This document shows positions 37,409 through 54,253 of a DNA stretch of 64,000 bases, piece by piece. The notes under the pieces were generated by a model. It searched no databases. It was not told where the DNA came from and saw only the letters and a list, made by a program, of their open reading frames with translations. The stretch covers positions 1,623,680 to 1,687,679 of the forward strand of contig OZ037767.1 in assembly GCA_964035545.1 (NCBI GenBank), in the 5' to 3' direction. Both the position numbers and the translations under genes were made by a program. Source of the DNA: Bugula neritina. Its lineage: Eukaryota > Animalia > Bryozoa. Positions within the stretch are counted from its first letter, which is position 1; each line of letters begins with the position of its first letter.

Positions 37409-38437
37409 AATATTGGACTTTATCAACTTTCTATTATATTTCATAATCAAAAAAACTCAAAACTTGTATTTTGTTTGCCAGATATTCAATCCTACTTTGA
37501 TATTTCTACTTACATAATATGTCAGTACTATCAGTTATATTTTACTTAGCTATATAAAATCTCTAGTTTTTTCATTCAAAAATTGTCTTAATTTAAATAT
37601 ACTTCAAATAAAAAGAAATGCAAACTGCACAGCAAACTAGAAAGAAATTTTTTTCTGAATATGTTGCAATTTTACGATTTATATTTTAATATGCAATAGC
37701 AATAATGTTGAGCTGCTTTGGGAAATTTATGTATATAACTTACTATAAATATGGTGTGTTCTATTTTATTTTTTGTAATATAAATTATAAACAATTGACC
37801 TTCAGAATTAAAAAATGAATAAAATAAGGAAAATCAGTAACATGACGAATACAGTTAACAATTAAAATGGTTTCCTTTTGACAGATGAAATGAAAACCTG
37901 CATCTGAGAAGGCTGGCTATCTCGGGATATTTTAACCCTCTTGAGAAATTACTACCAGTTGTGTATCAGACATACATGTTTCTTTAGGTTCAGGCAGCAC
38001 CTACGGCTGATGCCGATTGCGTGTGGAAAAGCTGAATAAACACTGAAGAGTTTCATTTTCTGACTCATTAGAACCTTAAAATTTGGCAAGTCTTACTATA
38101 AAAACATGTACTTATCCACAAATAAAGTTATATAAACTAGGCTATGCACAACCTTGGTACATTGAACTTATCTGTAAATTTACATTTGCCTATGAAGCCT
38201 AGGTTAAACAAGAACAGCAATGAAGTAACAAATGTAAAGTGATTATAGATAATGAATTAATCCAACATAATTTTAACATGTGAGCCTTAACTTGTACAAA
38301 TCAAAGTCAAAACCTATTCTAATAGCGTTCAACAGAATTTGTTTGAGACGCATCACACACTTTTCAACCTGATCGAAGCACTCTAGTCTATGGTGAACGC
38401 CAGCTTCTCATTGGACACTGTGGTGAATGCTGGCTTC

Positions 38438-41400
38438 TCATTGGACATCAGAATTTCTTTTCCTGTGAAGGCTGTGTCTGTGGAACCAGATGTAAGAAGA
38501 TATGAGGACGATTAGTATGACTCCGACGATACCATAATTAGCAGCTATCACTCCCGCCAGCTCCACCGGAGTCTCCCCAGCTTCCACCAACACCGCAAAT
38601 GTAGCAGTCAGATCACAAAAACTGCAAGTAAAGCGTCATATTACAAGACCTCTAGCGATAGAAACACAGTCTAGTATTCTCCATCAGCTCACATGACATT
38701 GTGACCATTAGCTTGTGTTCCACAGTTATTGATTATATTGACATCATTTACAGGAAACTCAAACAAGAAGTAACTTATTTAGAGAAATAACTTCCTGTTA
38801 TCCAGAGTTTTACAATGCCTCAGATGAAAGACATCGGAGGGGGTGGTAGACATTAGAACATATGCTGACCTATAGTCTAAGTCCACAACTCTCGCTTTCA
38901 ACACATAGAGTGCCTGGTAACTGTGGTGAAAGTATATTTGATTGGCTCCTGAATGGTTTAGAACTTCATAATTCAGCTCATGAACATGTCCGTCGTCTTC
39001 TGCATGAGACGGGTCAATAGAAAAACATGACTCATAGTTGTTAGCTGTCCAAATTTGGTCGGGTGGTAGTGAGTAGTTGGCTGTTTCCCTGTAACACGGG
39101 AAAATATGAGGTTGATCATGTGACCAGTTTACAGAGTGGGGATCATTCCTACTTGTAGATGAAGCAGAGAAAGTTAGAACACTGCTGGTCGTTGATGGCA
39201 TCACTTTTAAGATGACTTGTGTAAGTCTATGATTCTAGCCAATAGGCAACGGCGACACAAGTTGGTTTAAATACAGCCAATCAACTCACAGACACTGATA
39301 AACGTACTCTCACCTCATGTGAGACCAGGTCTGAGCCGGTCTGAGACAATTGACGTCTTCAATGCTACGAGTAAAACTGTAATCTATTTCACCTTTGATG
39401 TCCCACACTATAAAGTTAGCGTCTATCAGTTTAATGAACTTGTTGTGGTCGTAGAGCTCAAGAACTGGTTTATATTGATAAATATTACTGCGCAACAGAA
39501 CAGTGCAACCGATCTCTACAAAATATATGCAACATCTATGTCTCTGATAACAGCTACACATTTCTATGTCTCTGATAGCAGCTACACGTATCTATGGTAC
39601 CTTCTGTGTTTATGTAGAAAGTTTTATCATAATCAGCGATCTCTCCCGTAGTGAGATTTCTCCATCTTCCAGACTTCACCAACACTTCATTGTCGGGATA
39701 GTATTCCGTCAAGTTAACACAACTCTAAATCAGAACAAACATTTGCGATTTCTTTGGCTTATGATAGCTGCTCAACCAGCAATGAAGAAACTTTTACAAT
39801 AAAATAAATAAATGTTACATAAGGATCAAAGCATTTACTAAAAACATTTAGAAAATTTGACAGTTTTTGATTATTATGGATATAAAGAACAATCTTATTG
39901 TTGCAACAATCAAATGAAACTAAAAAAACTGCTTTTGTTGCATTCCATAAGAAATTACTTGGAGACAAGCCTGTAACTAGATTTTTCTATGTACTCTAAA
40001 GTAGAACTATGAGCTGAAGTAGACTTACAGTTGTGTCTGGTGTACGTACTCTCATATGGCGCCCAGCTGGACAGCCAATAGAAAGGTAAGTTATTGCATT
40101 GTTAGGCTCTGGACACAAGAGGTTAGCGTGGTGAGGTCTCAGCTCTATTAGTGCTGTGCCGGTCTTATCTTCTTCCTCTGCATCTAAACTCTTCTTGTTG
40201 GCAATCGTAATTGTCTGCCCAACAGAAAATAGTAGAGTGTGTGTTAGAGGGTGTTATGTGAGTGTGTTGTGTATGTGTGTGTTGTGTGAGTGTGTTATGT
40301 GAGTGTGTGTATGTGGTGTGCGTTCAGAAGCGGCGCAAAATAAGCAACTTGTTAAAACTCAAAAATTAAATGTGAAATTATGTTCAGCCACTTCAATTAA
40401 GGATTTACAGTTACTCAATCTCTAACATTATTTATACGGCATGATCATTTATGTGAAAGACTACTGATTGACACCAACCAAAGTTTGGCCGGACATCTCG
40501 CGATACTGCTCTCTATCTATCACACTCGTGTACTGCATTACATCACCCATATCACTGATGATCAGGTCTAGCGAGTTGGGCTTTGATTCGGGAAAGATCA
40601 GACGACCCCAGATTGTTAATTTTTCTCCTTTGTCCAATTGATACACCTGTAGAGAAATTCAATATGAGCATGATGCTTATCTCTATATAAGCATTCATGT
40701 GTGCATATATGCTAACATGCTTATTAGCATTTCCTAACATGCATAAGCACATGTAAAGCGTTTATTAGCATAAAATATGAAATCATATAATAGCCTAGAT
40801 TTTTCTCTGGGATACGTTGGCCATTTCTATATATTTACTGCAAACCACCACAAACTGCTTGACTACAAATTGGGGAGCACAGACTACTGAGTGTCAACTA
40901 TGCTATTAACTTAAGTTCTCATTACCATACTGAGTAATACTTGGTATGCAGTCTATTTAAAAAGAAATAATTTGGAGTTGTGTCAACTTGACTGATTTCT
41001 AACCAGCACTTGAATGGTGATTATTAAAGCTGAACTGTGGAGAAATTATTTAGCCTGTGTATCAGCTAGTCATAATCAAACTGCAAGGTTCTAGAACTTG
41101 CTATTATGCTCCACTAACTGATGTCAATACAATTAGATTATGCAGCAACCAATTTAAGCCCAATCACTGTGCTGATTAAATTGGCAAACTTCCAGAACAT
41201 TTCAAAAGCTAATAATATCATTTATTAACATTTGTAACAGAATAGAAATAAAAACCAATAAAGGAGTTAGTCAATTATACAGCTTATTATTTCCTTAAAA
41301 AGTTGACTATTTAATTCAAAGAACTCATGCTATTATTAGTAGAGTATGAGCTTGCATATTTGAGCAGCGGCCATATTGCAGTATTGAGCTTGAACTATTG

Positions 41401-44400
41401 GACTTAGAAATGAGTGAAATAAAATCCACAATATATAGCCAGTAGCCTTTTATTAAAATTCTAGAGTTATAAATAAAGCAAGTTTTATGTAATCAAAAGA
41501 GGTGTTGAAAATAAACAGCATACGGTTTAGTAGTACAGTGTGTTAGGCACCGGATATGATAGCTTTGTCAATAAACTTTAGAAAATCAACTTAAAAGACA
41601 AAGAAGACTTTAGCTAAAGCAATTCAGCACAAAAATTATCGGCATAAAGTTGGCAAAAACACACAACTTTATGTAAAAATGACTGATAACAAAATAAACC
41701 ATAATTTCAATTGCAAAAATGCAATAACAAAATAAGGTATTATGAATAGAAACCAACAGCATTAAACAAAAATGAAGTCAAAAGATTTCATACAGATTTG
41801 TGTCACAGGGTCTTGTTTTGACAGCTTCATAAGAACAAGTGATGCTTTGCTGAGCTTCGGCATTCTGGATTCTGCAGCCTTTTATTTGTGTCCTGATGAC
41901 GTGACATCCTGTGAGCCACTCGAACAAATAGATCATAAATGTTGGTTTGGCCGGTGGGCAGAGTAAATTCTTCTCGGATGGCAGAGACAAAGTGATTGCG
42001 GTGGGCGGTGCTATCGTACAGAGTCGACATCAAAACAATGCAATTCTTAGCTCTTAGAATCATATGGTTGGAGTCATCTTTCTCAGTTACCAGCACATCT
42101 TCCAACTCTCTGTGTTCCACATCACTTCTGCAGAACGAGGACACCGGAGAGAGAGCTTTCTGGCAGGCTTGCACAATTATGAGCTGAAATATAGACCCAT
42201 TCATGTTCAACGAAATTTTTTATATGTATAGACTTTGGTATGTGTTGAAATTTTCATTCCCATTCAAGACACAAATATCTGAGCATTTAAAACTAAATGA
42301 GAGTGCGACTTACCAAAGGTATCATAGCTGGGATAGCCTTCCTTGTCTCATCAATGATCTCTGCGATTTCACCGCGTGAATTATTTTCACCAATCAAATT
42401 ACCTCCGAATCCATGAGACAGCAGACAGACTGATACTACAGAGCACCGGCTGTGAACCTTGTTAGTTCTCTCCACCAACCAGTTGCGCAAATCTCCAAAG
42501 CATTTCCACTCTTTAAGGTCAACAATGAACCCCTTAGACCGCAACACTGCGGCAAGTGTTTCAGCCTCTCCTAAAGCACCTTTTCTTTGTACAGAAGTAT
42601 AGCAAACAAAAGCGTATTTTCTAGCTTTACTCTGAACAGGTGGAATAATGAAATGATCGCTAACTGAGGACATGACTCCAATCACCGCGGTGGACATGGG
42701 GGTATTGCACAAATTTATAAGTAGCCATCGCTTTACGAGTCTTGGGAACCAAAGACAGAGCTCTTTGACTAGTGCTAAATTGTCAGACTTAACCGCCATG
42801 CTTACGATAGCAGAGACCAGCGAGTTCTGTGTACTCTTACACAGGATGGGGCGTACCAGTGAAGGAACATGGGAGCGGATCAGTTGAACCGACTTGACAT
42901 CCCGAGGAGTCTCACCATACACATTTGTTTGTCTCCTCAGCCTTTTCATGACAGCAGAGTCAATGAGTGAATACAGAGTATTAGCAATGTCCACACTAGG
43001 AGTGAGTGAAGCAGCCAAATGTAGCAAATTCTCCCCATGCTTGTCTGTAACTTGACAGACTGTGTTTTTGTTAGTTTCTGACAAAGATGATATTAAACGC
43101 TCAGTCAATCTGCTATTATTATTGAGAAGAGCATATTGTATGGCATTGAGTCCTTTATTACTTGTGTGACCAATCAATTCGTCAAGAGATTCGCTGTGGA
43201 ACTGGTTAAGAGGAAGCAACTGGAAGACTAGGTTCATGTTATCAGATATCACACACTGCTGCAACACATTGCATCCCTTGCTGTCAGTCACACTAATCAA
43301 ATTGATTTGCTTGCATATATCAGTCAACTTGAGAAGCGGAGTTAGAGGGCAGATGCTATCGAGTGGGAGGGCACACTTCGGAAGCTCAGATAACCAGTTG
43401 GCTGAGTTCTTCCATTCATCAGATAGATTAAACAGAAGCGTGAACAATATATCCATATTGTGACATTCTAATGCGTAATGAAGTGAGTTTTTACCTTGGC
43501 AATCTCGATGGAAAATAAGAGTATCAACTGCGGGTTGATGCAACTTGGCAAGTGTTAGTAGATGGGAGACAAACTCCAGTTTGTTGTCGATAACAGCACG
43601 CTGAAGAGAATTCCTTCCATAGACATCTTCTACTGATACCAAATCAATTTGAGTACAAATCTTTCGCAAGGTCTCATAATTACCTCTTCCATCCTCTGTG
43701 TTACACATCATCAGTTGAAGAATATTGAGCCCAATAAAACTGGTCCTAACGAATGACTTATGGCTTATGATGATAACTAACTTCACTCACTGCTATCAGT
43801 ACTACAGGCTGCGTGAATCTAATTTTCACGTTTCTACCCACCTATTGATAGTAAGACTAGAGATAAACTTAACTAATAACAATATGAACAAAAAATACCA
43901 TCACCTCAGATATCCTACTGTAAAACCCCAATACTGCCCTATGATTTGTATTGCAGAAATACAATTTCACAAGAAAATTGGTGGTAGTACATTGCATTGT
44001 AGAGTATTTTAGCTGAAGTATGTTTGAAGTAGATAGCTGACACAAAACTGTCAACATACAGCTAAACCGACAACTCAGTCTTAACTCTAAAGGTTAGGGA
44101 AAACCCCAGCATTAGTAATTAAATTCCCCAAACTTTTAGTTATTACGCAGTGAAACTGCATTCCATCATCAAGTCAGTAACAACCAACTGTAATTGTTGG
44201 CTGTTGTCCTGGCAACTTCAATGAAAGGAATTTCTAGTTACAGACATAGCAGTGTTATGCTTTACTTGGGCTAGTATTGGTGCATGCATAAGAAACTAAC
44301 TCAAAAACCTTCTTTGTATGTCATAAGATTAATTCTGATAGTTTGGAATACAAGCAGGTTACTTATATTATACATATTTCTTATTTATGAAACACTTGAG

Positions 44401-47400
44401 TCTAAAATCATAACCACAAGTACAGTCTCAAGCACACAACAATGAAACTCAATGATAACTAATAACAAGGCCACACTACAGCAGCAAAGGCCACATGACA
44501 GAGCGTTTCCATTATTCCAAGGTTTAGAAACTTTGAAAACAGCTGACAACTCCCTTAGGAAAACTATTTCAAAGGGCAAACAACTCTACAACTTCAGACT
44601 TTAATTGCATGTTTCTCTATCTAACATAATTGGTGGAGATTTGGTGCATGTCTAATTTCATTGGTTGAAAACTAGGCCATGATCACATTAATGAAAGCTA
44701 TAGACAAAAGTTCTAGTAGTTTCCACACAGTATAAAAGAGTGAGTTGTGTGATATTTCTTTCGACTTCCTTTTGTTACATATTCTCATTAAAACTGGGAC
44801 TATAGACTGAGCACCTAGACTAGGAACAAGGAAAGGGGTATCACATACCTGGTCCTGTACGTTATGAGAGAAGTGTCTGTAAGGACAGCGACTATACACA
44901 CCGAGTGCATTGTGAAGCTCATCTGCTACAGGGTATCGTAACTTCTCCACACTTCTATCACTGCTCACTACAATATCATGTCTACATGAAAAGTGGTAAT
45001 ACAGTAATACAAGCATACAGTAAGGAAGTATAATAACCATAGCACCGTAATACAGTATGATAAAGGCAGCATTATGAAGATATGTTCAAGGGGATATTAT
45101 TTAGTTTATACTAGAGTGATACTGCAAATAAATATTGATTATTTGTTTAAGAGTCGAAACACACTGCGCCAAGATTCAGCTTGAGTCATCCTTAAAGTGA
45201 CAACTAGCTTCAATTTTTCATCACTGGAGCGAGTGAGTGGGGCAAGTGAGTGAACCGAGTTAATAGAGCGAGTTATTAGAGCGAGTTATTAGAGCGAGTT
45301 ATAAGAAAAAGGAAACTCAACACATTACCTGTGACGAGCCACAGTTGGTTGAGGTCATCAAACCAGTGAACCGTATCGGCAGTACCAGCGCTGTAGAATC
45401 CTCCCAGCTTGGCCAGCTGACGCTGTTTCACCTGTAAAAGGTCACCTGTTATATAAGAGTCAGATGGCAGCATTGTTTTGCATATTTGTATAATTTGATG
45501 TGTGTTGATGACTTATACTTTACTACAATATACCACATGACTGAGTAATTCATGATTCATCTATTAATCAATAAATTATATTCATTATATTATACAAATT
45601 ATTACTTTCACTAATTATATTAGATAAATTATAATTAGTATATTGAATAAATTTATTTTGATTATATTGAATAAATTATATTGATTATAATAAATGAATT
45701 TATATAAATTATATTAAATAAATATAACTGAGAGTAGAAGGATAAAGGGTTAAACTAGCATCACAACATTGCTATAAAGTATAAACCAAGATACCTGGAG
45801 AGAATAGAAAACTCCAGGTTGTAACAACTGATAACATACTGATTATAATGTAGCTTACTTTTCCGTAGAGTATTTGATGATTACTGAGAAGTATAGACAA
45901 CTCCCCACTTTTAGTAACAATAACGTCTCTTATTACATTAGGACTCGGGGCCAGTTCTGTGGTATTCTCATAGACGTACTTAATGCCATAACTACTGCTG
46001 TCGTCATAGCTACAGATAAACATACTGCTATCGTCATAGCTACAGATAAACATACTGCTGTCGTCATAGCTGCAGATAAACATACTGCTGTCGTCATAGC
46101 TACAGATAAACATACTGCTGTCGTCATAGCTACAGATATCAGGTTATTCTACACTCACTAACACAATTATTCTAAGTTCTTTTGCTAAACTATCGTAAAG
46201 TTACTTTGCTATAACTGAAATAGTTTTTTTACAGTTAGTCTTAAGCTGTATATGAATAATGCCAGTTCCACATAAGTCATGTACATTGTAGAATGAAATG
46301 GAATTTTCTAGACTATTTTACCGAGAGTATAAAAGCAGATGCCTTGTTTATGTATTTTAGTCTAGTAATAAAAGTTGCATAAACCACACAGCTCAATAAT
46401 CAAAGACTATTATATTACGACAAGTCATCTAATCTCTAAAATTCTGGTAGAGAAAAGCGATATTTTCAGACAACAGATAATCTTAAAAGAACCATCATAC
46501 GGCATTCCAATTTTGTGACAAAAACAAATTTAATAAATATGCATGTTTGTTTGTTTGTTTGTTTGTTAGTGAGTGTAATCACCTGTAGAAGAGGGAGTGC
46601 TGGTTGCGGAAGAAGAAGCCAGTCTGAGCGAGACCGAGAAAGAACAAGCTAATACGTCCAGGATCGTCTTTCTTGAAGTCCACCCAGAAAGGTGAGAAAA
46701 CCCACGTGTCTTTTAGCACGTCGTGAATAGGGAAAATAATCTGCAATAAACATACATAGAGAACATGAAGAACAACTCTGATAAACAAAATGATGGCATC
46801 TTTAATACTACAGCTACAGTCTAAAACTATAAGAGAAGTAGAATGCCATAACATAGTCTATTTAAAGTGATTTGATACCAGATATTTATTCTAGTGACTA
46901 TTGAATATAAGCTGTTGCCTATAATCCCGCCCTCCTTCCTATCTTGTAGGGGCGTGTGTTCACCCTCTATTCACAGGTAGTAAAATACACAACACTTACC
47001 CCCTAGACACACTTTGCTGTATCACAGGCCGCAAAAACAAATATCAGCTATTTTTGAAAATGTCTGCGCTTCCCGTACGACGCTACGGTGCGTCAGGATA
47101 AAGCACTGCTGTGTCGGGCTCCCATTGGACAGAAAGTGAACTTTGAGAATTTCAGCCCAGACACATTAAAAATGGCTGACATGTAACGTTACGGCTATTG
47201 ATACGGTAAAGTGTGTCCAAGGGGTATGTCTCAGCCAATCAATTCTCTTCAGATGTGAATCATTGGGCGTAGACTGAATACCTTGTTTTCTGAGTCTATG
47301 GTGAGTTTGATAGCGAGTCCAAGCCGCCCCGCCTTGATGTCAAAACTAACATCATGGATCTCAAAGGAGTAAGGTTTACCACCAGCCAAATCTGCAATCT

Positions 47401-50275
47401 GCTCCACAGGAAGTAGAATTTGACGAGCTGGTCCGAGGTTGTTAGATAGCCAGAGTTCCTTGCCATCAGTCATGGCTAGAAGGTCAAGGTTACTATCAGT
47501 AAACAAGCCTTCAATCAGCCAATCCTGTGAGGCGATATAAATCGGGCTGAAACCATCTGGTGCTAGAAAAGAACCAAAACTAACAGCGAATATAATATAA
47601 TAGCATCTAAACAAGATGTGAACAGTAATCCTTCATTACACTAATTCATCCGTAAAGAAAACCTCTGTATATTACTACATAAACTAAAAACTGACAATTT
47701 GAAATTTTATGCAATTTTGTGAAAATGTTGTGCAACAGACGCATGATAGTTCAATTAGTGGAGGGATATTTCTATTGCAGATTTAAGAACACCTACCTTG
47801 ATAAAGTTGAAACTGTGAAGAATTGGTGCTAAGATAGTAAATCTTGTTTGTTGTATCCAAGACAACAATGTTGTTGTACATGAGAGCGAGAGAGATAACT
47901 TTAAGGTTAGCGGTCACGCCCTCGGGAGCAGGAAGTAGATATAAAGACGACAAGTGATCTTGAGTGATGTAGAGGCTCCCGTCTACCCCCACTACTGCGA
48001 CATTACTCTGTATGACAAAGTTATTATGTATGACTATTTCATATAATATACTCACACATAATATATTATACTCATACATAACATAGTATAATATATCAAC
48101 ACATAATATATTATCTTCATAAATAATATAATGTACACCCATGTAATATATTACAATGTACAGACACACGACATAATTCAGTTTAGTTTTTATTTAACTT
48201 GAATTTACAAGAGGAAAGTTTACAAGAGCCCTCAAGAAATTCAAACACAAAAAAGAGAAACGTCGACATAAAAGGAGTTTTCCCCACCTGTCCAGCGTCG
48301 GCATATATAAAGAGAGTTGGGTTGGAGCTTTCGATGGTCATGTGATAGCTGGGTGTCTCAGTACTAAGCTGGGTGTACTTTGGCAAAGAGTACGGCTGAA
48401 CCAAGTCCCTAGTGTAAAGAGTATGTAAGATACACAGGCTATGTGACATATAGGGGTGATAGGAACTTCTTCAACTAGAAAAGGTTGACAACTCCAAAGT
48501 AGATTGTATAAATTGTGATAATTTGTGTGCGAGTTCCAGACTAATGCTATAGCATTATCAAAATATTATTTAACTCGCCACTTACTTGATGAAGCAATTA
48601 AACCTGGCCAGAGACTTGCCCGTGACTACGTATTTAGGAACTGTGGTGTTCCAGTGCTCTTGTATGACGCTTAGACTCAGCACCCAGTAGCCTATATCTT
48701 CATCAAAGTGGGACATCACAGCGTCCGTCGTTTCTATGGCGTTACCATTTCTATACTTTATCTGAACAGTGGGCTTCTGACCCAATACATAGTTTTCTAC
48801 TGTCAGCAGACGAGAGTCCTGTAGAGTATACAGGAAGTAGTAGAAGGTTTATATACAAAGAGTAGAAGGTTTATATACATACAGTAGAAGGTTTATATAC
48901 AAAGAGTAGAAGGTTTATATACATACAGTAGAAGGTTTATATACATACAGTAGAAGGTTTATATACAAAGAGTAGAAGGTTTATATACATACAGTAGAAG
49001 GTTTATATACATACAGTAGAAGGTTTATATACATACAGTAGAAGGTTTATATACATAGAGTAGAAGGTTTATATACATAGAGTAGAAGGTTTATATACAT
49101 ACAGTAGAAGGTTTATATACATACAGTAGAAGGTTTATATACATACAGTAAAAGGTTTATATACATACAGTAGAAGGTTTATATACATACAGTAGAAGGT
49201 TCCGTTGCCGATCCATTCAGTTCAGCTGGACTTGCCTTCAGGTTATCATAAACCCAGACGTGGAGCAACTGTTCGTCTCTCTGTGTAAATATTCCATAAA
49301 TTCCAAAATTATTTTGAAACTGATGGCTTTCATTTCATTAAAAATAATAAATAAATGTCTTTTTTTGAGCTTTTTAGTTACACCATTAGAGTGGCGTACT
49401 GTAACTAATATATATAACAATGTACAGCCCACCTTTCATATAAAATACAATAATAAATAGCGGGTACAATATATCACAATGTAATTATATACTCAGCTAT
49501 TTTTATACCGAAGTTTAGCAAAGTAAGGTTCACATACGATGCTGTGAGTATACTCGTCAGTAGAGTTTGGGTTCTTAGCAAGATCTCGTATTGCGATGTA
49601 CCAACTGTAACAGTCGTATGAAGCAGTAAATCGCAGGCGTCTAGATAAGGTGCTCTGATTGGCTACATTCAAGGAGATCTCGTGAGCTCCTTCCTTAGTA
49701 CACTGCAGGTACACTAACTAAAAATAGAATATATGAGAATAATTTCCCATTTCTCCGGGTACTAGTGATTAGAAATTAGAGGCATACAAATTAATTTTGG
49801 TAATGTTTTCATAAAAATAATATCCGTATACTTTGGAAGCTGAAACTCCTTAAAAAGTGGTAATATTTCACATAGAAATCAGCATATTTTTGCTTTGTTT
49901 TCTTTCATCAATAAGTGTAATGAGAAAGTAGAAAATATGGGATGTCACCCAAAAGGAAGTATTGAATAAAAACATTTACTAGCATATTCTTACTACAACT
50001 ATTACTACAACTATTATTATGAGGATTAACAAGTTTGTTACCTTTCCATGCGAACGACTTAGAGTGCAGTTTGGTGCAGACCATTGAAGCTGATCATCGG
50101 TTATGTTGGAGAGCGTAGTAATGACTTCGAGTTTGAGCAAATCGCGAGTTGTAGCTCTCCCACTGTGACGTTGTAAGTTAGTGTAACGCCACAAAACCGA
50201 GTTAGTGCCAGAAAAATTAATAAAAGACAAGCCAACTAACAAACTTACAAAAAATGAACAATTATTCAAGCCCAT
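38438..50275 (-). CDS. CATSPERE: Cation channel sperm-associated auxiliary subunit epsilon, 17 exons, about 983 aa
   Basis: Exons 50042-50275, 49538-49717, 49191-49268, 48586-48818, 48288-48408, 47797-48007, 47282-47562, 46583-46740, 45859-46009, 45329-45431, 44849-44967, 40479-40646, 40029-40214, 39601-39724, 39314-39515, 38870-39088 and 38438-38621 join without stops. Motifs collinear with mammalian CATSPERE as I recall it: signal + LWRY, CYSWY, VWVYD, LGQKP, CFI, CPY, YQLDKGEKLTIW, IGCP, KPVLELYD..DANFIVWDIKGEIDYSF, CLRPAQTW, NYESCFS, YEVLN, YSFCDLTATFAV, and a single C-terminal TM. Confidence 0.88.
41827..43711 (-). CDS. Ankyrin-repeat / caspase (peptidase C14) fusion protein, about 584 aa, nested in CATSPERE intron 11
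   Basis: Exon 42314-43711 (ATG at 43711 or 43708; frame open to 43786), 130-nt GT-AG intron, exon 41827-42183. About 6 ankyrin repeats (DVYGRNSLQRAV, DCQGKNSLHYAL, DSKGCNVLQQCV, NKGLNAIQYAL, DKHGENLLHLAA, NVYGETPRD). Caspase motifs: QRKGALGEAETL, VCLLSHG, IPL|LIIVQACQK, STLYDSTAHRN, QNPECRSSAKHHLFL. Confidence 0.85.
44203..44216. promoter_or_regulatory. RFX X-box-like motif GTTGTCCTGGCAAC
   Basis: Close to the RFX palindrome GTTGCCATGGCAAC; about 490 bp upstream of the ankyrin-caspase ATG. Confidence 0.4.
45994..46138 (-). repeat. 30-bp minisatellite x5 spanning the CATSPERE exon 9 acceptor
   Basis: Minus-strand unit tttatctgtag|ctatgacgacagcagtatg. Confidence 0.95.
46999..47224. mobile_element. 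Short MITE (about 226 bp) in CATSPERE intron 7
   Basis: Imperfect TIRs ccccctagacacactttgctgtatca / tgatacggtaaagtgtgtccaagggg, flanked by TA on both sides. Confidence 0.7.
48839..49201 (-). repeat. 22-bp minisatellite x16 spanning the CATSPERE exon 3 donor
   Basis: agtagaaggtt recurs every 22 bp from 48839 to 49191 (one copy has a single mismatch); the last copy is exonic. Confidence 0.97.
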
Positions 50276-50984
50276 CCTTAAATTTAAAGAGCAAGTTTAG
50301 TAAAACCAACCATCTGTTGCAATAACGTCTGTTGCAATAACGTTAAGCAATAGCGGAGAGTTATGCTTAATGCAAATCACAGTATTTAAACCGTAAAGTA
50401 AATTCATTGTGTAATAAGGAACTTTGATATTTTGTTACGAAATCTTTACAAAACAACTTTAACATGTCTTTCTTTTACGCGATTTGAAACCTTTTCTTTT
50501 ACAAATTAAATATAGAAAATATTTTTGCAGATTCAGGTAAACTTTCTGAAATTAGTATTTAAATTATTCAAAGTTGGCGGGTCTTCACAAGAAAAATAAT
50601 GCAAAAACATCATCTTTTGAAAGAGACGATTTTCCACGGAAAGAGGGAAAATATAACTCATAAATTTCAACGAACTTGCAAATTTAACTTGACTTTTTAT
50701 ATATATTTAAAAACCAATTGCGTATAAAAATTAATAATTGAAGGTATCGACATTAAAACAAAGTTGATCGAAAATAAACCTCGATGGGTAAATAAGAACC
50801 TCGCAATAAAAGCCATTCTTAAGCATAAAAAAATAAGAAAAAGTGATAAAGCTTATACAATACTGGTGTAAGGGGGAGAATAGTGTCACAACTATCGGAC
50901 TCATGCAACCAAAATAGCTGGGAGATGAGTAAGTAACAAGTGTCGCTGTAAGTCGTATAGAATGTAAGTAGTATAGAATGAACA

Positions 50985-51322
50985 TCACTGATACTCGTCT
51001 GAAGATGACTTTCTAGTTGAGAGTTTTCTCTCCTTGAAGTAGTACTGATCATGACAGTTGAGATACAGGAAGGAGGCGTGTGCGTCAGTCAGCTGGTATC
51101 GAGAAGGTAACTCGTAAGCTACCCTATTGTCAGTTATAGTTAGCGCATTCAAGTCATCTAGTGTAGCGGCCCATATCTAAAATAAACGTTTTGAGTGAGA
51201 AATGACCGTATTTGTTTTAGTAATGGTAGTAGTAGTAGCAGTAGTAGTAGTAGTAGTAATAGTACTAGTAGCACTAGTAGTACTAGTAGTAGTAGTAGTA
51301 GCAGTAGTAGTACTAGTAGTAC

Positions 51323-51366
<44 letters not shown>

Positions 51367-51397
51367 CTAGTAGTGCTAGTAGTAGTACTAGTAGTGC

Positions 51398-51453
<56 letters not shown>

Positions 51454-51484
51454 CTAGTAGTGCTAGTAGTAGTACTAGTAGTGC

Positions 51485-51547
<63 letters not shown>

Positions 51548-51589
51548 CAGTAGCAGTAGTAGTAGCAGTAGTAGTAGTAGTAGTAGTAC

Positions 51590-51672
<83 letters not shown>

Positions 51673-54253
51673 CTAGTAGTGCTAGTAGTAGTAGTAGTAG
51701 CAGTAGTAGCAGTAGTAGCAGTAGTAGTAGTAGTAGTAGTAGCAGTAGCAGTAGCAGTAGTAGTAGTAGTAGTAGTAGCAGCAGCAGCAGCGGTAGTAGT
51801 AGTAGTAGTAGTCGTAGTAGTACTAGTAGTGCTAGTAATAGTAGTAGTAGTCACAGTCATACCTCATTATCATTAGCATCATAAAACTCGTGTCCGACAG
51901 AAAAGAGAATCTTTGGCATGTGAGGTAGAATCACAAAATGACCAGTTGATGGCCCCTTCAAGCTGACAGCAATGGTAACATCGGACCACTGGTCAACTCT
52001 GGCATCATATAGCTCCAAGGGAATTTCATTTTTTCTTCCCGCACTACAACATGCAGTCACTTTGCATATATATTGGACTCATTTTTACACCTTGTAACCA
52101 CCAGATACTCATGTGTAAATTATCAACTATAAAACAATATTGGCCAACAAAATGCATCTTTTATCTCTATACATGTTTTCAACATGCTCTTGTTGTAAAA
52201 CAATGCTCCAAGGTTAAAGGCTAAAAGCATCATCAGGCCTTGTAAAGAGACCAACACTACAATAGTAAAACAAACAGCATCAGGGGGGATAATGACTATA
52301 TTTATTCTCTTGCAAGCTAGAATGTAAAGTATATAAGAAGACTGTGACAATAAGACACCCACCTGGCATGAAGTCCTCCACACACAAGCAGATTACTGTC
52401 GCCAAGAGGAAGCATAGAGTGACGTCTCCTACCAGTCCTCATCTTAGCCTTAGACACCCATGCGTGTGATCCTGCAAGGAATTGTAGGCTAAAACTTAAT
52501 CAAATTCCGTTCAGAAAGAAAATATCAAAATTAAATCTTTAATGTGACAAGTATTTAGGTAAATAGGTCATATTACAGCAACTAGGTCACATTACAGTAA
52601 CTAGGTCATATTGCAGTAACTAGGTCATATAACAGCAACTAGGTCATATTACAATAACTAGGTCATGTTACAGTAACTAGGTCATATAACAGTAACTAGG
52701 TCATATTGCAGTAAACAGGCTGTCATAGACACACGGAATCATTAACCTTGACATAATGCATATACAGCATCAGTGATTATGGTTTCCCTGGAAGGGCCGT
52801 AAGAATGTCCCCCGCTGACATAGAGTGCCCCAACCTGAGAGGCAGCAGCACAGCCATCAGTGGGGGAAGGCAAGTCCACCACAGTCTCCCATGTTAATGT
52901 ATTCAGGTCTAAGGCTTGGCAGTTTGTCACAAATGAGTGAGAATAAAGGATATCTTGACCGCCACACAAATAAAGGAGATCACCCAGCGCAGCTACGCCT
53001 ACAATTACAATGGAACAACAATTTGCAAAGTGACTGCTACTTTTGCATCTTAAAAGCACGCTTGATTTCAGAAATTAAGTTTAAAAAGCATAATTTCAAA
53101 TAAAAATGCAACTATTGAAATGAAGTTCAAGTGAATTACCCGAGGGAGCAAGCTGAATAGGTGGAGCTGGTAGTAGGTGTGTCTTTTTAGATGCGGAGTC
53201 ATAACAGTGGACACTCACAACAGAACCATTTCCACTATAAAACCCTCCGTACTCCTTTACAGTCACAAAATATAAACAGCTCTGTACGGTGACAATACCG
53301 CACACTTTGAGGGATGATTCGTGTCCAGATGCAATAGTGAGTACGTTAGTACCGCCAGTTAAAGGGCATTTGCTGCAGGCAACAAGTTCCAAGCATTTAA
53401 GTGGAGTATTTCTCAGCATAAGTACAATGCTGGGTTCTACACTACGAGGACGTCTTTGAATTTCACTGACAGCCCATTTTTTAGAAAAATCAGTGTGATA
53501 TTCATGCGCGGCATTAATTAGTCGAATAATCGCGTCGGGATAGTTTTTCTGTAACAGAATCTCAAGCTCAGATGAAGACATCAGAGCGTATCGAATATGA
53601 GGCAAGAACTTAGTGGTTAGAGCTACTTGGTCTTCTGAATCTGAAAAAACTTTCTCAATCCACTTTTCAACTCTCTTCAGTAAAATAAATTCTGAAGAAA
53701 CTTGTAAACAATTTTTTGACAGAATTGCCATCATGTCTTCAGGTTCTATCCCCTCCATTAAAGTCATGTCTTTGCTAATGGCTTCGAAGCTTTTAGCCAA
53801 GTTTATGTATAAGCCATTTATTGCACTGGTTAATGAATACTTTTTTGCTAAATTCATTAGAAATGCATAACTTGTTACTGTGTACTGTTTACATATCCAG
53901 TCTGATAAAAAATTAATAAGATGCCCGATTTGTAGATGACTACAAGCATCCACAAACCCCTCTATGTTTTCTGAAGTCAAGTGCAAACATCCTATACCTT
54001 TGTACATATATTCAATTAAAGGTTTCACAACTTCAATGTCTAAGCCTTGCAAATTAATTTTATTTTCTTGCGACTCCAACATTCGAGTTTCGCCATCAAA
54101 AAGAATTTTAAAATAATCAGAATGTTTAGATAAGACTGATTTGTGCACTTGGAAATCATATCCGTCGCAAGTCACAAGAAAATCAACTTTGTCGCCAATT
54201 TTTTTAACAATTTTTATGGGTGGTTCATCGCTTCCCTCCTGAAGATCAGCCAT
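50985..54253 (-). CDS. BTB-BACK-Kelch (KLHL-like) protein, about 615 aa
   Basis: Exons 53140-54253, 52747-52998, 52363-52471, 51863-52043 and 50985-51176. BTB: DFLVTCDGYDFQVHKSVLSKHSDYFKILF..MLESQENKINL. BACK: LQVSSEFILLKRVEKW..HIRYALMS. Kelch blades: LYLCGG, LYVSGG, LLVCGG, ELYDARVDQW. No specific orthologue recognised. Confidence 0.88.
51225..51851. repeat. About 630-bp (GTA/TAC)n trinucleotide array in the last intron of the Kelch gene
   Basis: Interrupted GTA repeat lying between the donor at 51862 and the acceptor at 51177. Confidence 0.97.
52561..52714. repeat. 19-bp minisatellite x8 (aactaggtcatattacagt)
   Basis: Inside Kelch gene intron 2. Confidence 0.92.

Follow-up and report, generated by a model that had tools for sequence, protein, structure and literature searches.

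A probable same-strand nested gene pair in the bryozoan Bugula neritina: an ankyrin-caspase gene within an intron of the CATSPERE orthologue

We analysed a 64,000-nucleotide (nt) stretch of the Bugula neritina genome (contig OZ037767.1, positions 1,623,680 to 1,687,679; hereafter the window, whose own numbering is used throughout), which carries on its minus strand a predicted orthologue of CATSPERE, the gene for an auxiliary subunit of the CatSper sperm calcium channel. Intron 11 of this host gene very probably contains a complete, independently transcribed two-exon ankyrin-caspase gene in the same orientation, the two forming a true same-strand nested pair. The host pre-mRNA is spliced from 44849 to 40646, with removal of the whole nested gene, and the nested gene yields its own mRNA of ~2.2 kb from which its own 130-bp intron has been removed. 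Comparison with a sibling lineage shows that the arrangement has been kept and that both genes are under constraint. A sequence-only reading of the window had proposed the same-strand nesting, and all of its coordinates hold to the base, with RNA joints at 44849|40646 and 42314|42183.

Assembled contigs of four sequencing runs (X2, X7, X9 and X10) were placed on positions 39900-45800; X2 is DNA-like, and X7 is labelled as RNA-Seq with random selection. Protein searches were carried out exon by exon or with database proteins. The features of the two genes, with the evidence for each, are given below (E, expectation value).

38441-50296, minus strand: host gene, CATSPERE orthologue, about 17 exons (orthologue profile, Pfam, best library matches)
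45329-45431, minus strand: host exon 10 (RNA joints 44967|45329 in X7, X9 and X10)
44849-44967, minus strand: host exon 11 (..HNVQDQ), with the phase-0 donor CAG|GTATGT (RNA; its end is profile position 596)
40647-44848, minus strand: host intron 11, 4202 bp, GT..AG, containing the whole caspase gene (4202-base skip in X9 contig 16 and in X7)
40479-40646, minus strand: host exon 12 (VYQLDKGE..), where the CATSPERE Ig-like domain begins (RNA, Pfam; profile position 596/597)
40029-40214, minus strand: host exon 13 (RNA joint 40214|40479 in X7, X9 and X10; profile positions 648-718, E 3e-11)
41438-43784, minus strand: extent of the nested ankyrin-caspase mRNA (X10 contig of 2169 nt covering 43784-41438; X9 contig of 2015 nt covering 43716-41550)
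42314-43711, minus strand: coding sequence of caspase exon 1, 466 codons, with ankyrin repeats and the N-terminal caspase part with the LLSHG histidine (Pfam, caspase-3 alignment)
42184-42313, minus strand: caspase intron, 130 bp, GTAAGT..TTTCAG, phase 0 (RNA joint in X7, X9 and X10)
41827-42183, minus strand: coding sequence of caspase exon 2, 118 codons plus stop, with the QACQK cysteine motif (Pfam; single copy in the genome)
41449-41454, minus strand: AATAAA polyadenylation (poly(A)) signal of the caspase gene (kept in the sibling contig)

The junction across the nest intron was read from X9 contig 16 (530 nt), which aligned to 45431-45329, 44967-44847, 40644-40479 and 40214-40165; its loose end past 45431 corresponds to 45859-45888 of exon 9, an exon ending at 45859, and the contig thus spans host exons 9-10-11-12-13. 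The joint 44849|40646 was present both in X9 (with a side of 121 nt) and in X7 (with a side of 23 nt). For the nested gene, the joint 42314|42183 was found in X7, X9 and X10, and neither of the caspase mRNA contigs of 2169 and 2015 nt showed a joint to host exons. These contigs (43784-41438) lie wholly inside 40647-44848, and the GT..AG introns of both genes are on the minus strand. At its end the X10 caspase contig reads AACATA, matching the sibling genomic sequence, followed by a run of A that is absent from that sequence and begins ~17 nt past the AATAAA, which is only suggestive of the caspase poly(A) site at this position.

Host exon 11 ends at 44849 (..HNVQDQ, then GTATGT) and host exon 12 starts at 40646 (CTCTACAG, then VYQLDKGE..). 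The nested gene has its ATG at 43711, the end of its first coding exon at 42314 (TTG|GTAAGT), the start of its second at 42183 (TTTCAG|CTC) and its stop codon at 41827-41829. The four boundaries at 44849, 42314, 42183 and 40646 all fall between codons and are therefore phase 0. The nest intron is at least 7 times longer than any other host intron: the others demonstrated by RNA measure 264, 361 and 427 bp, and the remaining gaps between profile-mapped exons do not exceed about 600 bp. Five AATAAA hexamers occur within it. Flanking direct repeats and transposon signs or copies were looked for around the nested gene and none was found, and each flank of the intron occurs only once in the genome. 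Over its initial 400 bases (44451-44848) the nest intron shows 90-94% identity to the sibling contig without gaps, against 65-89% for other intronic DNA; this stretch could act as promoter or enhancer for the caspase gene, or in splicing.

For the identity of the host we built a CATSPERE profile of 953 positions from nine full-length named orthologues. The profile is colinear along the minus strand from 50206 to 38477 and crosses from exon 11 (position 596) directly to exon 12 (596/597), a continuity indicating that the two halves belong to one predicted protein, broken exactly at the 4.2-kb intron. The predicted protein has a signal-peptide-like start at its N-terminus and a C-terminal transmembrane segment in the last open reading frame (ORF) piece (38441-38635). 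Pfam recognised CATSPERD-E_C (PF22850) at 39313-39591 (2.7e-10; 40.5 bits against a cut-off of 27.4), together with CATSPERE_Ig-like (PF22849) at exon 12 (6e-5; 23.5 bits), which falls under its cut-off of 28.3 because the domain is split over exons. Precomputed domain matches on a public protein model of this locus, KAF6023127.1, agree with a CATSPERD/E C-terminal domain and an Ig-like domain. A match to CATSPERE_NTD2 (PF22843) at 49188-49286 (E 0.009, under cut-off) is the sole one genome-wide. Pfam gave no match on single exons of the N-half, and the N-terminal beta-propeller (PF22844) had no exon-wise match in the genome; compared with other CATSPERE proteins, the B. neritina propeller is too divergent for an exon-by-exon Pfam search. 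Several N-half exons nevertheless fit the orthologue profile colinearly (E 3e-7 to 2e-4).

A word search with the CATSPERE C-half of KAF6023127.1 found nothing, and a full library search, for which the CATSPERE part of a database protein was the query, yielded 239 relatives. The ten best clusters were looked up and all are named CATSPERE, epsilon or C1orf101; the sources of the top clusters are a nemertean, a brachiopod, a sea urchin, an acorn worm, a priapulid, fishes and mammals. By these matches the host is closest to CATSPERE rather than to CATSPERD, B or G. It resembles CATSPERE (C1orf101) in its domain order of N-terminal part, Ig-like domain, CATSPERD/E C-terminal domain and single C-terminal transmembrane segment, and it shares 32-36% identity with named orthologues over the C-half, in addition to the colinearity of the locus with the profile. 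We therefore designate it the B. neritina orthologue of CATSPERE, its membership of CatSper being predicted by homology. With the exon 11-12 RNA joint and the colinear profile, the sequence-only account of the host stands: the two halves form one CATSPERE gene, one of whose introns is far longer than the others (4202 bp against at most about 600 bp), the four splice sites are phase 0, and the host transcript skips the nested splice sites and AATAAA in the 4202-base skip of X9 and X7. A second locus with a CATSPERD/E C-terminal domain lies elsewhere in the genome (C2:25468286-25468447) and is presumably the delta paralogue.

The nested gene encodes a 584-amino-acid (aa) ankyrin-repeat protein with a divergent caspase-like domain. 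Exon 1 matched Ank_2 (9e-11) and weakly Peptidase_C14 (0.065; profile positions 15-94), and exon 2 matched Peptidase_C14 at positions 121-228 (2.7e-6; 27.7 bits against a cut-off of 21.4). In a PDB sequence search the p20 part aligned weakly to zebrafish caspase-3 across LLSHG/SHG (E 0.048), and the same search with exon 2 gave no match; read directly, exon 2 opens with LIIVQACQK. A catalytic-type histidine is thus encoded in exon 1 and a cysteine in exon 2, so the His-Cys dyad of C14 peptidases is present and the product is a putative aspartate-directed protease. The protein is like animal caspases (Pfam Peptidase_C14) with N-terminal ankyrin repeats in its SHG and QAC motifs, and the same architecture occurs in an Atlas cluster of eukaryotic proteins. 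It differs from animal caspases in being very divergent, with the E value of 0.048 as the only PDB caspase-3 match, and in lacking a close paralogue. Against the sibling contig, the ratio of nonsynonymous to synonymous substitution rates (dN/dS) was 0.25 for exon 1 and 0.05 for exon 2 (dS ~0.16), indicating that the caspase gene is under purifying selection as judged from coding divergence.

A paralogue search in this genome showed the nested gene to be single copy, with no relative close enough to be its donor locus. At least 177 other exon-level Peptidase_C14 matches are present in the genome, which suggests a large expansion of caspase-domain genes in B. neritina; many of the matches lie in tandem clusters (for example C1:32.8-35.5 Mb, C6:2.5-6.3 Mb and C7:7.58-7.71 Mb). 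Bacterial Ank-C14 clusters appeared in an Atlas feature search with scores <0.9. Horizontal transfer was considered as a source of the gene and rejected on account of its spliceosomal intron, its animal-type QAC and SHG motifs and its poly(A) signal.

The same nesting was found in a sibling lineage. The caspase exon-1 ORF belongs to one 90% cluster of the protein collection, which has a JGI member and a GenBank member. The JGI member lies on a metagenome contig of 7.1 kb (L001) that follows the window colinearly over 47866-40636, and the GenBank member on VXIV02002758.1 (L009, from GCA_010799875.2), colinear over 53525-33364; DNA identity is about 86% for both, and in both the caspase gene separates host exon 11 from host exon 12. 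Relative to L001, the host exons of the window are 97-99% and the introns 87-90% identical, and the caspase and host splice sites, ATG, stop and AATAAA are all kept in the sibling contig. The nesting is accordingly older than the split of the B. neritina sibling species. The sibling lineage also carries deletions of 37 and 33 bases in the caspase 3' untranslated region (3'UTR; window 41499-41537 and 41747-41781), seen in the RNA contigs of three runs and in L001. No nested gene is called in the CATSPERE locus of Saccoglossus (18.7 kb) or in the C-half CATSPERE model of Tubulanus; in both, the nearest intron lies ~10 codons upstream and measures roughly 630 bp in Saccoglossus and 77 bp in Tubulanus (approximate values, from tblastn ends). 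The Tubulanus polymorphus model (OZ123226.1, 6001-8679, L010) is a RefSeq 'CATSPERE-like' protein of 448 aa that starts ~100 residues before the Ig-like domain, with no gene called in the 6 kb upstream, and it may be another split CATSPERE.

These comparisons bear directly on whether a false join during assembly placed the caspase gene in the CATSPERE locus, a reading for which no support was found. The order is the same in the window, in L001 and in VXIV02002758.1, and X7 contigs 13 and 15 together with the DNA-like X2 contigs give continuous cover of the nest intron. With the same nesting in two independent sibling contigs, misassembly, against which the sequence-only reading had cautioned, is therefore excluded, and we regard the chance of such an artefact as negligible. 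The public gene models offer a different division of the locus. KAF6023127.1, deposited as 'C1orf101 [Bugula neritina]' (P0002, 927 aa), joins caspase exon 1 and exon 2 as far as ..TNIYDLF to host exon 12 (VYQLDKGE..) and the CATSPERE C-half, and the same annotation gives the CATSPERE N-half as a separate 526-aa gene (L009 3322-15478; window 38392-50296). The fusion depends on one further feature:

41924-41925, minus strand: weak GT (TTT|GTTCGA) inside caspase exon 2, the donor of KAF6023127.1 (the fusion reads ..TNIYDLF|VYQLDKGE..)

In favour of two genes divided in this way are the GenBank deposit itself and its construction with transcriptome hints. The RNA, on the other side, joins exon 11 to exon 12 in one contig and has no joint at the weak donor at 41926/41925, where the caspase contigs continue through into their own 3'UTR. 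Orthologues are continuous across the proposed split, and KAF6023127.1 fits the CATSPERE profile only from residue 552, its Ank-caspase part giving no match. We thus find it highly improbable that the public models are right. Predictors such as AUGUSTUS are not known to nest same-strand genes. The 2020 B. neritina annotation was made with AUGUSTUS and transcriptome hints (PMC7576161), and the fusion with its separate 526-aa N-half is most readily understood as an artefact that AUGUSTUS made of the nesting. The second type of chimera raised by the sequence-only reading, ankyrin/p20 plus the CATSPERE C-terminus, is thus already present in the database, though as an artefact. At residues 882-927 the model also lacks the transmembrane segment, having been spliced to a repeated SNEKPAFTTV tail, whereas window 38441-38635 encodes this segment and a short tail; the SNEKPAFTTV tail is probably a further model error.

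Some of the evidence weighs against a pair of simply independent genes. The RNA data are assembled contigs of the sibling lineage, with exons 93-97% identical, and not raw reads of the sequenced animal; from contigs neither the strand of a transcript nor its two ends can be read, and rare isoforms are missed. The entire nest intron is covered in X7, the cover reaching 25-28 nt into both host exons, and in that run depth over host introns 9 and 10 is zero; the nest-intron cover could be intron retention, read-through or DNA carry-over. A rival reading is regulated coupling, in which the phase-0 sites would produce in-frame CATSPERE-caspase fusions or expression of the two genes would be mutually exclusive and mechanistically linked. 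In its favour, phase 0 at each of the four boundaries would keep both chimeras in frame, the caspase intron has strong consensus sites at its donor and acceptor, and in X7 the cover over both host exon boundaries is unlike that of the two other host introns. Phase-0 introns are, however, the commonest class, and four in a row are weak evidence for coupling. Intron retention of this sort is described around nested genes, one account reporting that they provoke both retention and cryptic polyadenylation in their hosts (PMC3192792).

The chimeras envisaged by the sequence-only reading did not appear: neither 44849->42183 nor 42314->40646, nor the joint 41926->40646 of the public model, was found in the contigs of X2, X7, X9 and X10, from which rare forms could escape. 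The catalytic histidine and cysteine lie on opposite sides of the caspase intron, and therefore neither chimera would have a complete active site, each lacking one of the two residues. Mutually exclusive expression or regulated coupling, which had been taken as implied by the nesting, does not follow from it, as host and caspase mRNAs are both present in X7, X9 and X10 (presumably whole-colony samples, which are uninformative on single cells). The contig depths of the two mRNAs vary together, at about 200-650 and 110-410 in X7 and 6 and 11-16 in X9 and X10, but contig depth from whole-sample runs is no measure of co-expression. Taking these points together, we consider regulated coupling unlikely. 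A more specific form, which we think very unlikely, is selective retention or slow splicing of the nest intron: rare in-frame joining of exon 11 to caspase exon 2, with the poly(A) site that this exon carries, would then give a truncated secreted CATSPERE ectodomain, and nested transcription would thereby tune the output of the sperm-channel subunit. One further joint was examined and set aside: X10 contig 3 runs from host exon 11 (44846) into 25 letters absent from the window, which match, with 2 mismatches, a repeat that is present twice on another chromosome (C7:2607630 and C7:2634609). We take this joint to be a probable contig or assembly-graph artefact.

For the independent nested pair that we favour, the following mechanism is likely. 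The caspase gene would be transcribed from its own promoter, presumably within the ~1-kb stretch 43785-44848, and its transcript would end ~17 nt past the AATAAA, at a poly(A) site of its own. During host transcription, presumably in spermatogenic cells, the polymerase would pass the caspase poly(A) site and all five AATAAA hexamers of the intron, and the strong outer donor/acceptor pair would outcompete the caspase sites in the host transcript. The two genes would then be neighbours sharing DNA, with productive chimeras absent or amounting to noise. Upstream of the host, a simple repeat of ~680 bp (51180-51863, minus strand) separates CATSPERE from a BTB-Kelch gene; its three frames read as poly-Thr, poly-Leu or poly-Tyr.

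Nested genes on the same strand are frequent in animals, and it is commonplace for the members of a nested pair to be expressed independently. In mouse and human, where more than a tenth of genes take part in host/nested pairs, with a preference for long introns, an intronic protein-coding gene has a promoter and a poly(A) site to itself (PMC11480708); OMP inside an intron of CAPN5 is given as another nested example (PMC6549253). The B. neritina locus resembles the mouse and human pairs (PMC11480708) in that the nested gene sits in a single host intron of unusual length, has exons and probably a 3' end of its own, and is spliced across by the host. The sequence-only reading had held that nested genes are more often antisense; such a bias exists, but in mouse and human it is only slight, the pairs being almost evenly split by orientation (PMC11480708), so that about half have the same orientation as the pair described here. 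The present case differs in being from a bryozoan, and the CATSPERE/ankyrin-caspase pair is new. With read-through or conjoined genes it shares a common strand, compatible phases and a public model fusing both genes; it differs from them in that the RNA contigs contain no fusion junction and the fusion model uses a weak donor inside a coding exon.

The locus is thus a new example of a well-known arrangement and leaves the knowledge of nested genes unchanged. Its immediate value is for annotation: on our reading the GenBank C1orf101 entry is a caspase-CATSPERE chimera, with the true CATSPERE split over two models, and it would mislead bryozoan surveys of CatSper subunits or of the domain architectures of caspases. 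As a clean, RNA-supported same-strand nesting in a compact lophotrochozoan genome, conserved between cryptic species, the locus may be useful for testing gene predictors and for work on interference between host and nested genes.

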